Virus record (IMG/VR): IMGVR_UViG_3300031787_007614
Coordinates: 124,001 to 188,000 of that record
Length of the DNA: 64,000 nt
Direction: 5' to 3' (one strand)
Position 1 is the stretch's first letter, and each line of letters opens with the position of its first letter. Position numbers and translations under genes: made by a program. Below the pieces are notes generated by a model that did no database searches, was not told the origin of the DNA, and saw nothing but the letters and a program-made list of their open reading frames with translations. Below are positions 4,587 to 25,056 of the stretch, piece after piece.

Positions 4587-4615
4587 ATTGTAGCAGATTG
4601 ATTAAAATTTGTCAA
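4587..4615 (-). promoter_or_regulatory. sigma70-type promoter TTGACA-17-TACAAT
   Basis: -35 at 4615-4610, -10 at 4592-4587. Confidence 0.8.
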
Positions 4616-5162
4616 CCACTATCCACTTTGCATCTTGCATTTGGCAAATGATTCCTTGTACCACAGCAATGTCTTGTGCTTGGAATTCAGTATCCAAAAA
4701 CCAACGGCACCGAGCGCCGTTGTGCCAAAACTCTCTATTGCGGTCTGGATGCGGTCTAAACTGGCTTACCAGGCCCACTGTGCCCACTGTGGTCTTTCGA
4801 ATTGTTTGGTGTTCGGGTCTATCCGAACACACCACAACGGATTCTGTAGCTACAGACGTTTGTCCGCTTCGACTTTGCACTTCTGCTTCTGCTCGAGTTA
4901 GTGCAATATTGCATGCTGACTGTTCGGATTGAGAAAGATCAAAAGACTGGTCACCGTGAGCAGTAAGCCACTGGTTTCCAATCCTTGCACGGAAACTCAC
5001 AATGCATCGTTTCTTTCCATTAATTTCTGGAGTTACAGTCTGTGTCAACGCAGATCTCTCAAGTATCTGCGCACGACCATTAGTGGCTGTTTTGCTTTGT
5101 AAAACGCATTCACCGGCTGCTACTGCCGCAGGTAACATGAGAGCAATGACTAGTTTTTTCAT
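4602..5162 (-). CDS. Secreted Cys-rich hypothetical protein
   Basis: Signal-like MKKLVIALMLPAAVAAG; ATGA overlap with the upstream gene; six Cys in the mature region. Confidence 0.75.
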   Translation of the reverse strand: MKKLVIALMLPAAVAAGECVLQSKTATNGRAQILERSALTQTVTPEINGKKRCIVSFRARIGNQWLTAHGDQSFDLSQSEQSACNIALTRAEAEVQSRSGQTSVATESVVVCSDRPEHQTIRKTTVGTVGLVSQFRPHPDRNREFWHNGARCRWFLDTEFQAQDIAVVQGIICQMQDAKWIVVDKF

Positions 5163-5515
5163 GAGCAGTGTTTTAAATGTTGCAGATTCCAATTTATCTG
5201 TTTGTTTATGGCACCAGATGCAATTTCTTGTCTGCGTTGATAGCCGTCTGGGTCAGTTATTTGTGTCCAAAAATTGCCAATGTTTCCTAGTCCAGCAAAC
5301 AGCATCTCATCTTCTGATTGCCTCATGCTTTGCAACATCGCAATCTGTTGTTCTTTGATACGACAGTTGGGCTGGAAAAAATTTAGATCACGCTCGGACA
5401 TGGGCATGCGACTGACATTGGTAACGGCGCACCCACTACACAGGCTGACAATTGTAACGCAGAGTCCAAAGACGGTGGCGAATTTGCGATCGCTGACGTG
5501 CATAATCTTGCTCAC
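5159..5515 (-). CDS. Putative lipoprotein
   Basis: Hydrophobic stretch ending LCSGC. Confidence 0.7.
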   Translation of the reverse strand: MSKIMHVSDRKFATVFGLCVTIVSLCSGCAVTNVSRMPMSERDLNFFQPNCRIKEQQIAMLQSMRQSEDEMLFAGLGNIGNFWTQITDPDGYQRRQEIASGAINKQINWNLQHLKHCS

Positions 5516-5687
5516 TTTGAAATGATTGACGAGGAATTAAATCTTGACTTTCGATCCACCTGGCAATGGCAGACCTATTGGCACAGTCATCTGGCATGAT
5601 GGCCACATCTATTGGCATGGGTCTAGGTGCTGATGCACACCCTATCAATGTGATCAATAGCAAAGGTGCCAGATGTTTAGTGTTCAT
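5436..5687 (-). CDS. Putative lipoprotein
   Basis: LLLITLIGC lipobox. Confidence 0.7.
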   Translation of the reverse strand: MNTKHLAPLLLITLIGCASAPRPMPIDVAIMPDDCANRSAIARWIESQDLIPRQSFQSEQDYARQRSQIRHRLWTLRYNCQPV

Positions 5688-5835: not shown

Positions 5836-5864
5836 ATTATAGCAGATTGGCTTTTATTGGTCAA
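5836..5864 (-). promoter_or_regulatory. sigma70-type promoter TTGACC-17-TATAAT
   Basis: The -35 contains the TGA stop of the upstream gene; ATG 6 nt after the -10. Confidence 0.85.
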
Positions 5865-6217: not shown

Positions 6218-6246
6218 AGTATAGCAGATCGAGAATTTCCGGTCAA
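6218..6246 (-). promoter_or_regulatory. sigma70-type promoter TTGACC-17-TATACT
   Basis: -35 at 6246-6241, -10 at 6223-6218. Confidence 0.8.
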
Positions 6247-6249
6247 CCC

Positions 6250-6277
6250 AAAAAAAAGCCCTACATGCAGTAGGGCT
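6250..6277 (-). terminator. Intrinsic terminator after the phasin-like gene
   Basis: AGCCCTAC-TGCAT-GTAGGGCT followed by a T run on the minus strand. Confidence 0.9.
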
Positions 6278-6294: not shown

Positions 6295-6567
6295 TTACTT
6301 TTTAGAAGTTGCTGTGTAAGCCTTCATGATGCCTTCGCCAAATTTCACATAGTCAAATTTGGTGGTTTCTTGCACGGCTTTGACAGTTTCGCTGGCAACA
6401 GTGGTTGCGGCGTCTGTGGTAGCTTTGAATGCTTTCTTGGTGTATTCGGCTTGATTGTCAATGAACTTGATCATTGCGTCTTTTACCAATTCGTTTGTGA
6501 CGAAAGTGTTAACCCAAGTTCTTTTCCCGGTTTGTACGGTGTCGATGAATGCGTCTGCTGTAAACAT
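6295..6567 (-). CDS. Phasin-like (PHA granule-associated) protein
   Basis: Small amphipathic helical Ala/Thr/Lys-rich protein (FIDNQAEYTKKAFKATTDAA); PhaR-like box upstream. Confidence 0.6.
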   Translation of the reverse strand: MFTADAFIDTVQTGKRTWVNTFVTNELVKDAMIKFIDNQAEYTKKAFKATTDAATTVASETVKAVQETTKFDYVKFGEGIMKAYTATSKK

Positions 6568-6572
6568 AGTGT

Positions 6573-6623
6573 TCTCCTTAATTAAGCAAGTTGCGATAGG
6601 ACCCGGCCTATCCAGCGTCCTAT
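6573..6623 (-). promoter_or_regulatory. Structured 5' leader: hairpin plus ROSE-like CUUGCUU/AAGGAG SD stem
   Basis: ATAGGAC/GTCCTAT stem (6596-6602 with 6617-6623), then CTTGCTT-AATT-AAGGAG. Confidence 0.6.
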
Positions 6624-6628
6624 GTGCT

Positions 6629-6660
6629 ATTATATATGATAATTATGTTGCATTGCAACA
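6629..6660 (-). promoter_or_regulatory. Promoter TTGCAA-18-TATAAT overlapped by palindrome TGTTGCA-T-TGCAACA (PhaR-like operator)
   Basis: Perfect 7-1-7 inverted repeat at 6646-6660; -10 at 6634-6629. Confidence 0.6.
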
Positions 6661-6732
6661 ATTATTTCTAGTGGATGGTCACTAAAAACCAAATCCAAAA
6701 ACGGCATACTAAATACAACATAGGAGATTGAA

Positions 6733-7002
6733 ATGTTAAAAGCTATTTTTAATTGGTTTACCAGCAAGCCAGTTCCAGGCACAGAAGCACCTGTTGTAAA
6801 AGCTGAATCTGCACCTTACAAAGTTGAACCACCACCAGTTGTTAAAGTGAGTGAACCAGCACCTGTTGGTGACCATGTAAGGGTAGAAGCCACTGCACCA
6901 GTTGAGTCAGCACCAAAAGCCAAACGAGCTCCTGCTGTAAAGAAGGCTGTTGCACCCAAGGCACCTGCTAAACCTAGGGCAAAAAAAGCACCTAAACAAT
7001 AA
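6733..7002 (+). CDS. Pro/Ala/Lys-rich histone-H1-like small protein
   Basis: C-terminus APKAKRAPAVKKAVAPKAPAKPRAKKAPKQ; TAAATA and AGGAG upstream. Confidence 0.7.
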   Translation: MLKAIFNWFTSKPVPGTEAPVVKAESAPYKVEPPPVVKVSEPAPVGDHVRVEATAPVESAPKAKRAPAVKKAVAPKAPAKPRAKKAPKQ

Positions 7003-7056: not shown

Positions 7057-7497
7057 ATGAAAACAACAATAACAACATTAGCCTTGATGCTGGTTACAGC
7101 TGGAGCCACCGCCACTGAACTAGTACATCAATTTAATTCGCCGTCGTTCAGTGGTATCGGTTACAGTAGTCACGTCCTTACAATCGAACAACTAGAGGCA
7201 ACACGCCGTCAGAAACTACGAGAAGAAGAAGCAAGCAGGATAGCCAAAGCCGAGCTTGCTGCCAAACAAACCAATATAGCTAAATTTCTAGTCAACGTAG
7301 AAAGTCGCATCTACGCTCAGTTGAGCAAACAGTTGGCAGACTCGCTGTTCAGCGGTGGGGGCACCACAGGCAGCATGGATTTCCAAGGCACCAACATCAG
7401 TTGGGTCAAAACTTCTACTGATGTAACCATGACCATTCTAGAAAGCAATGGCAATCGCACAGAGATCACTGTGCCACTAGCGAGTTTTGCATTTTGA
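7057..7497 (+). CDS. csgF: Curli assembly protein CsgF-like
   Basis: Signal peptide, then ELVHQFNSPSFSG (CsgF N-terminal F..PSF.G motif). Confidence 0.85.
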   Translation: MKTTITTLALMLVTAGATATELVHQFNSPSFSGIGYSSHVLTIEQLEATRRQKLREEEASRIAKAELAAKQTNIAKFLVNVESRIYAQLSKQLADSLFSGGGTTGSMDFQGTNISWVKTSTDVTMTILESNGNRTEITVPLASFAF

Positions 7498-8321
7498 TGA
7501 AAGCACTGTTTTTATCATTGCTGTTGGCTGTGTCTGGGTGTGCCAGTTTGGATCAAACTCAATTTGATGTACAGCCACCTCAATTGGTGCCACGACAAAA
7601 TTTGTTGGCTGTGTTGCCCGAGTTAGATGGTCCAAGAATACCTGTTGCTGTATATGGATTCATGGACAAGACTGGTCAGAAAAAAAACAACGACAAGCTG
7701 GCGTTATTTTCTACAGCGGTAACACAAGGTGCTGAAGTGTTTTTGATCAAGGCCTTGCAAGACACCCCAAACTGGTTCACAGTGGTTGAACGTGTAGGCC
7801 TGGACAACTTGATCAAAGAGCGTCAACTGATTCGCAATCAACGTGAAGTGTACGAAGGCAAAGATGCCAAGCCGCTCAAGCCTTTGTTGGTAGCTGGACT
7901 CATGATTGAAGGTGGCATCATTGGTTATGACACCAACATAACGTCTGGTGGTCGAGGAGCCAGAGTGCTAGGCATTGGTGCCAGTACTCAATATCGTGTG
8001 GACGAGATTGTGATATCCATGCGAGTGATTTCAGTCAACACTGGAGAAGTGTTGCTGAATACGGCTGTGAGCAAGACGGTGTTTAGCACAGCTCACAATC
8101 AAGGTGTTCTCAAATTTGTTGACCTTGGCACAACCAGTGTTGAACTTGAGAACGGGGCTGCTATTAACGAGCCCACCACATACGCTGTTCGAATAGCCAT
8201 CGAGCAAGCGGTGTACGAAATGATCCAAGAAGGAGCAAAACGGAAACTTTGGTCATACAAAAAGGGCACAAGCCCAAGGAGTGCGGATGAGGATAGTAAC
8301 TTGCCCACAAAACAAAAATGA
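7494..8321 (+). CDS. csgG: Curli secretion pore lipoprotein CsgG
   Basis: Lipobox VSGC; AVYGFMDKTGQ, FSTAVTQGA, WFTVVERVGLDNLIKERQLIR, EGGIIGYD. Confidence 0.95.
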   Translation: MMKALFLSLLLAVSGCASLDQTQFDVQPPQLVPRQNLLAVLPELDGPRIPVAVYGFMDKTGQKKNNDKLALFSTAVTQGAEVFLIKALQDTPNWFTVVERVGLDNLIKERQLIRNQREVYEGKDAKPLKPLLVAGLMIEGGIIGYDTNITSGGRGARVLGIGASTQYRVDEIVISMRVISVNTGEVLLNTAVSKTVFSTAHNQGVLKFVDLGTTSVELENGAAINEPTTYAVRIAIEQAVYEMIQEGAKRKLWSYKKGTSPRSADEDSNLPTKQK

Positions 8322-8944
8322 AAATAACAAGATCTCTCAAAGGGACAATATTTGCATTGAGCATGATGGCTTTATCGCATGTTCAAGCTTCAAATGAAAT
8401 TTACATAGAGCAAGTTGGTGATAATGCCACAGTGACTTTAAAACAAGCAGGCAGCAACAATACCATTGGCTCTGCCCTAGCACCGGCCTTTATTGGTGGC
8501 GGCCAAAACGTAGTTTACGTTGAACAATCTGGCAGTAGCAATCAACTGGCCATGTTGGTCAACGGCGCTGGCACTAATGTGACGTTAACAATCACAGGCG
8601 ACAGCAACCAACAGACCATCACATGCGGAACCAGCATCAGCGCCAGCTGTAGCGGATCTGCAATCACGCATACCATAACAGGTGACAACAATGATGTGCA
8701 AAGTATCCTAGGTACCAATGGTGGAGCGCATACCAGTAACATCACAGTGCTAGGTGACTACAACCATGTGACTCATAGCAGTTCAGGATCAGGCGCCAAC
8801 TCAGCCACAATCAATGTTACTGGGTCAGGCTCAGGTGCTACCCCAAATGCAATCACTGTATCACAGAGTGGTATGAATACTCAAAGTGCAACCGTCAATG
8901 CTTCGGGCAATAACATTAATATCAGTATTATTCAGTCTGACTAA
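8318..8944 (+). CDS. Curlin-repeat (CsgA/CsgB-like) secreted protein
   Basis: Signal peptide; repeated I/V-x-Q-x-G-x-x-N units (EQVGDN, KQAGSNN, EQSGSSN, ITGDSN, ITGDNN, SQSGMN). Confidence 0.75.
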   Translation: MKITRSLKGTIFALSMMALSHVQASNEIYIEQVGDNATVTLKQAGSNNTIGSALAPAFIGGGQNVVYVEQSGSSNQLAMLVNGAGTNVTLTITGDSNQQTITCGTSISASCSGSAITHTITGDNNDVQSILGTNGGAHTSNITVLGDYNHVTHSSSGSGANSATINVTGSGSGATPNAITVSQSGMNTQSATVNASGNNINISIIQSD

Positions 8945-22860: not shown

Positions 22861-23319
22861 TTAGTTTGTGTAGGTGATCGCAATAGTCTTTGGCTTGGCA
22901 TCTTCGGGCACTTCACGTTTCAAGTGAACGCTTAGAATACCAAGTTCAAGGTGTGCATTACTGATCTCCACATGATCAGCCAACTGAAATTCCCTACGGA
23001 AACTTCTTTCGCTGATGCCTTTGTGCAAATATTTTGTTGTAGTATCCTCATTCTCCACAGTCTCACGACTGTGCTTACCTTCAACAATCAAGAATTTTTT
23101 GTCCTTGGTTACTGTGAGGTTATCATGCCCAAAGCCAGCCACGGCCATGCTGATCATGTACTCATCTTCATTGATTTGTACAATGTCATAGGGTGGGTAG
23201 TTGGTAGAGGATTGTTGAGCACTCACACGCATGAGTTCATCAAACATGCTATCGAAACCGATACCAAATTTGGTGAGTGTGGGAATGTCGAAACTACGAA
23301 GGGTGAGAGTTTTTGTCAT
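22861..23319 (-). CDS. Small heat-shock protein (Hsp20/IbpA-like)
   Basis: NYPPYDI, AVAGF, YLHKGISERSFRREF, A.L..GILSV. Confidence 0.95.
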   Translation of the reverse strand: MTKTLTLRSFDIPTLTKFGIGFDSMFDELMRVSAQQSSTNYPPYDIVQINEDEYMISMAVAGFGHDNLTVTKDKKFLIVEGKHSRETVENEDTTTKYLHKGISERSFRREFQLADHVEISNAHLELGILSVHLKREVPEDAKPKTIAITYTN

Positions 23320-23326
23320 TTGTTTT

Positions 23327-23394
23327 CTCCTTTATATAAGCAAGATGACTTGTAATGTAGCCCCACTATGGGCACTACAACATTATTTATTATA
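23327..23394 (-). promoter_or_regulatory. hsp20 leader: promoter motifs, hairpin and ROSE-like thermometer
   Basis: Overlapping TATAAT/TAAATA at 23394-23384; TGTAG/CTACA hairpin; CTTGCTT-ATATA-AAGGAG. Confidence 0.65.
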
Positions 23395-23634: not shown

Positions 23635-23858
23635 CAGTACAGTTTTTTAGGTAGTGCTTGCTCGGCTAGTTGTTTGCGCCAGCGATTTTTGGCAGCACTG
23701 CGTTTGAGTTTGCGAGCAGTAGTGGGCTTGATGTAGTGCTCTTTTTCACGGAGATCATTGAGTATGTTTGACGCTTGAATTTTTTTCTTGAGTTTTCTCA
23801 GCGCACGTTCAATATTGTTGTCCTGAACCAACACTGATCTACCATGTAATTTACCCAT
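23634..23858 (-). CDS. rpsU: Ribosomal protein bS21
   Basis: IERALRKLKKK, LREKEHYIKPTTARKLKR, C-terminal LY as in E. coli S21. Confidence 0.9.
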   Translation of the reverse strand: MGKLHGRSVLVQDNNIERALRKLKKKIQASNILNDLREKEHYIKPTTARKLKRSAAKNRWRKQLAEQALPKKLY

Positions 23859-25056
23859 TGACTTTCTTTAACTCCTCGGGAGTATTTACCATGTTTTCGT
23901 CAATTTCTACATGGGCGATGTTTTGTTTAGTATACTCGCCTAGCTTGTACATGTGTGGCAGTAGCACACGTTCCAGTTCACTGTGTAGTCCACGAGCACC
24001 AGTTTTGTTCTTGATGGTATTGTCGGCAATTTTGACCAGGGCCTCTGGGGTAAAATCCAACACAATCTTGTCTTGGTCAAACAGCCATTTGTACTGTTCT
24101 ATATAACTGTGTTTGATATCAATCAATATCCTAATGAGATCATCTCTAGTTAAATCTTGCAATGCTACCCAGGTTGGGAAACGACCAACAAATTCTGGAA
24201 TCATACCAAAGCGAATCAAATCGTCAGGTGTGACTTGGTCTAGGTGCGTGGTGGTATCCGAGTTTACTTTGGCACCAAACCCTATGCTGGTTCCACGCAC
24301 TCGACTTTTTACAATGTTATCCAGGCCCACAAATGCGCCGCCTGCAATGAACAGGATATTGGTGGTGTCAATTTCAACTGTTTCACCTGATGGATGTTTG
24401 CGCCCACCTTGTGGAACAATTCTACACTTGGTTCCTTCGACTAGCTTGAGCAGAGCCTGTTGTACACCTTCACCTGATACATCTCTTGTGATGGATGCTG
24501 ATTCCGAACGACGAGAAATTTTATCAACTTCATCTAAAAACACAATGCCACGTTGGCATCGATCAACGTCATTACCAGCAGCCGCAAACAGTCTACTAAT
24601 CAAACTTTCCACATCATCGCCAACATAGCCTGCTTCAGTAAGACTGGTGGCGTCAGCAATCACAAACGGCACGTCAAGATATCGTGCTACCGATCTTGCC
24701 AACAGAGTTTTTCCCGAACCAGTGGGCCCAAGCATGAGAATGTTGACTTTTTCAATTTCGGTATGTTTGTCATGATTGTTGATGCGTTTGTAATGATTGG
24801 CAATTGCCACGCTCAACACAATCTTGGCTTGATCCTGACCAATTACGTATTGATCAAGATGTGTTTTGATCTCAATTGGATTCAATGTAGGGGATGTTTT
24901 TGTTTCTTTAACTATTAGTTCTTCTTTGAGAAGAGTTTCACATAAATCCACACATTCATTGCAAATTGCAACACCTTCGCCCACAATTAGTTTGGCCACT
25001 GCGTCTTTATGTTTGTTACAAAAACTGCAGGTGTCAATGGTTTCAGTCTGTTTCAT
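23851..25056 (-). CDS. clpX: Clp protease ATPase subunit
   Basis: Zn finger CSFC..CNEC, GPTGSGKT, GYVG, LDEVDK, RDVSGEGVQ, IGF loop. Confidence 0.97.
   Translation of the reverse strand: MKQTETIDTCSFCNKHKDAVAKLIVGEGVAICNECVDLCETLLKEELIVKETKTSPTLNPIEIKTHLDQYVIGQDQAKIVLSVAIANHYKRINNHDKHTEIEKVNILMLGPTGSGKTLLARSVARYLDVPFVIADATSLTEAGYVGDDVESLISRLFAAAGNDVDRCQRGIVFLDEVDKISRRSESASITRDVSGEGVQQALLKLVEGTKCRIVPQGGRKHPSGETVEIDTTNILFIAGGAFVGLDNIVKSRVRGTSIGFGAKVNSDTTTHLDQVTPDDLIRFGMIPEFVGRFPTWVALQDLTRDDLIRILIDIKHSYIEQYKWLFDQDKIVLDFTPEALVKIADNTIKNKTGARGLHSELERVLLPHMYKLGEYTKQNIAHVEIDENMVNTPEELKKVNG

Follow-up and report, generated by a model that had tools for sequence, protein, structure and literature searches.

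A 364-kb freshwater jumbo phage carries a small, highly conserved gene whose promoter matches the PhaR-controlled promoters of bacterial storage-granule (phasin) genes and whose leader matches a heat-shock RNA thermometer of the ibpA type. Judged from sequence comparison alone, the phage seems to read its host's carbon-storage state and temperature before making this protein. A phage cassette plugged into host PhaR control is likely, whereas a granule-binding function of the product is plausible but unproven.

The initial annotation had described a phasin-like gene in a self-contained unit of promoter, leader, gene and terminator, with a PhaR-like palindrome over the -35, and had inferred that the phage may use host PHA sensing to express a phasin only when granules are present. 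The observation itself was confirmed. Its interpretation is only partly supported: comparative evidence strongly favors the PhaR-like operator, but the phasin assignment has weak support. That the leader is a ROSE-like RNA thermometer element had been missed.

The cassette and its palindrome

The window, i.e., the whole stretch of 64,000 nucleotides that was analyzed, covers bases 124,001-188,000 of a 364,404-bp virus record with direct terminal repeats. It encodes a ribonucleotide reductase, a DnaB-type helicase, a DNA ligase and tail-spike-like proteins, and hence, it belongs to a jumbo phage. The promoter and leader lie in a 165-bp gap between divergent genes. The features are as follows, in window coordinates:

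6257..6277 (-), predicted intrinsic terminator with an 8-bp GC-rich stem, a 5-nt loop and a T7 run, 18 nt after the stop codon
6295..6567 (-), coding sequence of a 90-aa, basic (pI 8.9), predicted all-helical protein behind an AAGGAG Shine-Dalgarno (SD) sequence
6574..6590 (-), leader hairpin II, in which the anti-SD CUUGCUU pairs with the SD AAGGAG and leaves a bulged G, a ROSE-type SD mask
6596..6623 (-), leader hairpin I (GGAYGCYG ... CGGGUCC) at the predicted 5' end of the mRNA
6629..6634 (-), -10 hexamer TATAAT, with the predicted transcription start at about 6623-6625
6653..6658 (-), -35 hexamer TTGCAA, inside the palindrome
6645..6661 (no strand), putative PhaR-type operator; the 17-mer has the core TGCA-N-TGCA (TGCA-T-TGCA at 6649-6657), is centered at about -30 and spans about -38 to -22
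6669..6684 (no strand), second palindrome of the type TAGTGA-N4-TCACTA, centered about 23.5 nt upstream of the PhaR-type box

The sequence at 6646-6660 reads TGTTGCA-T-TGCAACA, a perfect 7+1+7 palindrome. It has no other exact copy in the window or in the phage genome, where TGYTGCNNNGCARCA occurs at this site only. A consensus scan finds the sigma-70 promoter TTGCAA-18-TATAAT on the minus strand at 6658..6629 with 10 of 12 matches. None of the other 45 loose YTGC-N3-GCAR sites in the genome lies 16-19 nt ahead of a good -10. The element is therefore specific to this gene and not a general phage promoter motif. Near-consensus sigma-70 promoters also occur at neighboring small genes, TTGACC-17-TATAAT at 5836-5864 (-) and TTGACC-17-TATACT at 6218-6246 (-), which suggests that the region is read by host RNA polymerase.

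To assess conservation, we retrieved 80 related viral loci, which give 62 distinct upstream regions. In 39 of the 62 the exact core TGCRNYGCA is present, with the 17-mer ending 9-10 nt before a TATAAT or TACAAT -10, and 45 of the 62 match the half-site ATGTTGCA in at least 13 of 16 positions. Several lineages changed both half-sites symmetrically (TGCG..CGCA), which preserves the dyad. Information content is 1.47 bits per position in the box against 0.46 in the 20 nt upstream. However, a few lineages lack the box, or carry a variant with a two-base spacer or a shifted position, such that the element is common but not universal.

It could be argued that the palindrome arose by chance around a TTGCAA -35, as TTGCA-type -35 elements readily form short dyads, and the scan also scores the site as a weak terminator-like hairpin. 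We consider this very unlikely. Both half-sites are conserved, with symmetric co-changes, across loci whose proteins are only 56-70% identical, while neighboring bases drift, and no plus-strand gene ends upstream of the site that would need a terminator.

The second palindrome, TAGTGA-N4-TCACTA, is present in 37 of the 62 distinct loci, mostly 23.5 or 32.5 nt from the PhaR-type box, and is unique in the phage genome. Tested as a host motif, it was rejected, since genomes of Polynucleobacter (see below) contain 2 sites against 16 for the reversed control. Its binder may be a phage factor.

Comparison with PhaR-type sites of a candidate host genus

Two papers give experimentally anchored PhaR motifs: YGCRNYGCR with AT-rich arms in S. 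meliloti, validated by EMSA (PMC12542648), and YTKNTGCRNYGCANMAR in R. eutropha (PMC12849132). The palindrome has the intact published core TGCRNYGCA with a single-base spacer and matches 16 of 17 positions of the R. eutropha motif on either strand, the single mismatch being at an outermost base. That consensus is degenerate, and nine sites with one mismatch occur in the phage genome against about three expected. The match alone therefore proves little; the weight comes from the intact core, the position on the -35, the conservation in related phages and the likeness to host phasin promoters.

The decisive comparison came from a candidate host genus. A scan of species-representative genomes with the protein profile returned only two contigs, a 70-kb contig in a Haliscomenobacter MAG and a 6-kb contig in a Polynucleobacter MAG. 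Both carry the phage gene with its leader (65% identity; 53.9 bits with leader model R1, see below) and look like mis-binned phage fragments rather than bacterial genes. Taking the Polynucleobacter genome as a center, we examined 31 genomes of this genus. PhaR was found in 28 of the 31 and Phasin_2 genes in all 31. Upstream of the main phasin gene, 20 of 28 loci carry a TGCRNYGCA core with arms ATGTTGC...GCAACAT, 8-9 nt before a TATAAT-like -10, which is the architecture of the phage promoter. At the eight flank positions not used for selection, the phage and host frequency matrices correlate at 0.94. The strict 15-mer occurs 17 times in the 31 genomes against 2 for the reversed control. Eight of the 17 lie directly upstream of Phasin_2 genes, three lie in a conserved coding stretch, and two precede a Crp-family regulator. 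A site was also found between a B12-binding-domain gene and bchF (loci L120 and L127, site at 1501, and L121, site at 1501, for the Crp-family and bchF cases), which hints at a wider PhaR regulon in the genus.

The phage itself has no PhaR-type DNA-binding domain. Our findings support the conclusion that the site is very probably an operator for a host PhaR, and that the phage promoter mimics, or descends from, a host phasin promoter. Compared with PhaR-repressed phasin promoters (phaP1 of C. necator/R. eutropha, phaP1/phaP2 of S. meliloti, and phaP of Polynucleobacter), the palindromic core, the one-base spacer and the extended arms agree, the box overlaps or abuts the -35 of a strong sigma-70 promoter, where binding would exclude RNA polymerase, and it precedes a gene for a small, abundant-type helical protein. 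The phage promoter differs in that it lies in a virus without phaR, phaC or phaZ and carries a single box instead of the two or three boxes of phaP1. Furthermore, the product is not detectably homologous to host PhaP1-type phasins, and the host phasin leaders are unrelated to the phage leader.

Alternatively, the palindrome may be the operator of a phage-encoded regulator or of another host regulator, serving temporal control of an early gene and only resembling a PhaR site. The second, gene-specific palindrome just upstream suggests that phage factors act here, and both the nine one-mismatch sites and the two-base-spacer variants are compatible with this view. We regard it as unlikely, since the box is unique in the phage genome and defines no phage regulon, the phage lacks a PhaR-like DNA-binding domain, and the extended arms, not only the core, match host phasin boxes at the same promoter position.

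The assignment of the host is an inference. Only the mis-binned 6-kb contig, the GC content and the regulatory likeness point to Polynucleobacter, and an attempt to infer the host through the phage CsgG gave no counterpart in the 31 genomes. This CsgG (PF03783) forms, together with CsgF (PF10614) and a weak curlin-repeat protein, a curli-secretion-like operon at 7057-8944 (+), which lies next to the phasin-like gene in only 7 of 82 related loci. Gene neighbors vary between related phages in general. Three small lipoprotein-like genes at 4602-5687 (-) (83, 118 and 196 aa, the last with a weak 17kDa_Anti_2 hit) are the most constant neighbors, present in 26-34 of the 82 loci. The divergent 89-aa ORF at 6733-7002 (+), present in 15 of 82, gave no family hit; its Lys/Ala/Pro-rich tail recalls histone H1, AlgP or the PhaF C-terminus, which may only reflect low complexity.

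The ROSE-like leader

The leader of about 55 nt was the only part of the region with a strong Rfam match; one further sRNA match was borderline (E 0.99). It hit ROSE_3 (RF02523), the short ibpA RNA thermometer, over the full model length with 24.1 bits, and six of ten related loci scored 25.8-36.5 bits at the same position. All of these scores are below the gathering threshold of 43 bits. However, ibpA leaders of the candidate host also reach only 33-35 bits. A search of the phage genome with RF02523 did not list the 24-bit site, which was presumably lost at an initial filtering step.

Covariation supports both hairpins. In hairpin I, RNAalifold finds 6 of 9 pairs with compensatory changes, and 93% of cells are paired over 59 distinct leaders. 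In hairpin II, 87% of cells are paired over the same 59 leaders, with a U-G/C-G switch and CG/UA co-changes. Taken together, 90.8% of cells pair against 83.2% in shuffles, 0 of 500 shuffles reaching the observed value, and slid controls give 40-60%.

We built a covariance model, R1, from the phage leaders. It finds leaders in five Polynucleobacter genomes at 29-40 bits (scores of 38-40 bits are among these), every one in front of an IbpA-type Hsp20 gene with a sigma-32-like promoter, such that matching between phage and Polynucleobacter ibpA leaders is reciprocal. R1 also finds a second copy in the window (23317-23390, 37 bits), in front of a phage hsp20 (22861-23390 (-), including the leader). 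The encoded IbpA-type Hsp20 (PF00011, E 1.5e-16) is 38% identical to Polynucleobacter IbpA, and a ClpX homologue (23851-25056 (-)) lies next to it; together they form a small proteostasis module. Phage-borne hsp20 genes are known as auxiliary genes of cyanophages. The gene under study is not an alpha-crystallin and shares only the leader type with the phage hsp20.

As in ROSE_3, the element consists of two hairpins, the first with GGAUGCC..GGGUCC-like arms and the second pairing UYGCU with the SD around a bulged G, and it starts at the predicted mRNA 5' end and ends at the start codon. In contrast to the ibpA elements, it precedes a non-sHSP gene and follows a sigma-70/PhaR-type rather than a sigma-32 promoter. 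The cassette is thus a mosaic of a phasin-type promoter and operator joined to an ibpA-type leader.

The protein and its possible role

The gene is present in a single copy in the phage genome and belongs to a large virus-only family. More than 1,187 relatives at 60-92% identity were found in metagenomes, nearly all 90-92 aa, many of them on contigs of 140-350 kb. The family comprises more than 1,100 clusters at 90% identity and 370 at 50%. The latter were obtained (E<=1e-3) in a profile search of 1.84 billion cluster representatives, which returned nothing longer or annotated. None of the Polynucleobacter genomes examined encodes a relative. An AlphaFold (AF2) model based on a 50-sequence alignment predicts three helices (4-22, 26-69, 73-88) at pLDDT 87. 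The helices are amphipathic, with hydrophobic moments of 0.33-0.46 and p 0.002-0.06 against shuffles.

A search against phasin families had been named beforehand as a check on the initial annotation, and the protein itself hits no phasin model at E<=1; direct scans against Pfam, NCBIfam and PHROGs gave nothing usable. Searches of GenBank phages by blastn and tblastn found no match, and a profile search of PDB sequences returned only designed helical proteins. Foldseek against the PDB and an atlas shape search gave no specific fold, the fold matches being within the noise expected for helical hairpins. Comparison by hhalign of two alignments, A1 and A2, with 19 Polynucleobacter PhaP1-type phasins gave a probability of 0.5%, although that phasin alignment has low diversity and the test is accordingly weak. 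A local HMM of host phasins against the family gave weak hits in inconsistent registers. As hhalign against PhaR was also negative, a weak HMM hit to the PhaR C-terminal region (E 0.04) and the PHB_acc neighbor mentioned below were dropped as evidence for the idea of a PhaR decoy.

Four weak signals, all below curated or noise thresholds, nevertheless point to phasins. Among 104 distant members, Phasin_2 (PF09361) is the top recurring Pfam hit, with 20 members against 3 or fewer for any other family and a best E of 1.2e-4; the best relative, however, scores 20 bits against a cut-off of 24.9 bits, and two alignment registers are seen. TIGR01841 phasin is the top recurring NCBIfam hit (8 members, best E 0.0044). 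The nearest annotated language-model clusters are Phasin_2, PHB_acc and PHA_synth_III_E, with scores of 0.83-0.87, a level at which they are leads only. Finally, the only solved phasin, PhaP of Aeromonas hydrophila (5ip0), ranks 13 of 48,161 chains, with rmsd 1.9 A over 70 residues and a Z of 7.2, which is within helical noise. The protein resembles phasins in being small, amphipathic and predicted all-helical, but at 90 aa it is half the length of PhaP1-type phasins, and its invariant C-terminal KFDY-x-KFGEGIMKAY motif has no counterpart in the host phasins aligned here. It is not a demonstrable member of Phasin_2, and we consider it about as likely as not that it is a PHA-granule-binding, phasin-like protein.

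In our preferred explanation, held with moderate confidence, a large group of freshwater jumbo phages keeps a self-contained expression cassette that combines two host-type regulatory modules with a phage-specific small protein. Free host PhaR dimer would bind the palindrome and block RNA polymerase, and the promoter would fire when PHB granules sequester PhaR. Translation would be expected to rise with temperature, or with whatever melts the SD-masking hairpin. The product would coat PHB granules or other hydrophobic surfaces and act alongside the phage Hsp20 and ClpX, keeping granule surfaces covered or helping to mobilize the polymer while host gene expression is shut down. Of these steps, the analysis establishes the sequence likeness of the promoters and, by covariation, the structure of the leader; binding by PhaR and its release by granules, thermosensing and the granule-coating role of the product are inferred, the last with weak support. 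That the phage carries no other PHA gene counts against this explanation.

A possible, though less favored, alternative retains the PhaR-type wiring but not the granule protein. In this view, PhaR titration and the thermometer serve only as a read-out of a well-fed or stressed host and gate another small helical factor, e.g., a chaperone-like partner of the phage Hsp20/ClpX set, a host-takeover protein or a structural accessory. The failure to reach any curated phasin threshold, the negative hhalign comparison and the leader shared with hsp20 are in agreement with it, as are the control of many non-PHA genes by S. meliloti PhaR (PMC12542648) and the box preceding a Crp-family regulator in Polynucleobacter. 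On the other hand, the weak annotation signals all point to PHA-granule families and to no other theme, and about half of the strict boxes in the candidate host genus precede phasin genes.

PhaR operators, phasins and ROSE-like thermometers are all known. In the literature library searched we found no report of a phage-borne PhaR-type operator or of a viral phasin, and a host phasin used as query found no record among GenBank phages. A tentative further reading is that a widespread clade of freshwater jumbo phages carries the first virus-borne PhaR operator and a virus-specific phasin-like family, sensing PHB-granule load through titration of the host repressor and temperature through a captured ibpA-type thermometer, and then coating or remodeling the granules during infection, probably to tap or shield the host's carbon reserve. 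If PhaR really controls this promoter, a lytic-type jumbo phage would read a host metabolic-state repressor through operator mimicry, stacked with an RNA thermometer, which gives a testable model of how phages time auxiliary functions to the physiology of the infected cell. It would also link viral infection to the turnover of PHB, a major bacterial carbon store. As the family is very conserved and unannotated, assigning it a role would annotate a core gene of an abundant group of freshwater phages, and the regulatory likeness offers a new kind of host-prediction signal, namely shared operator and leader modules.
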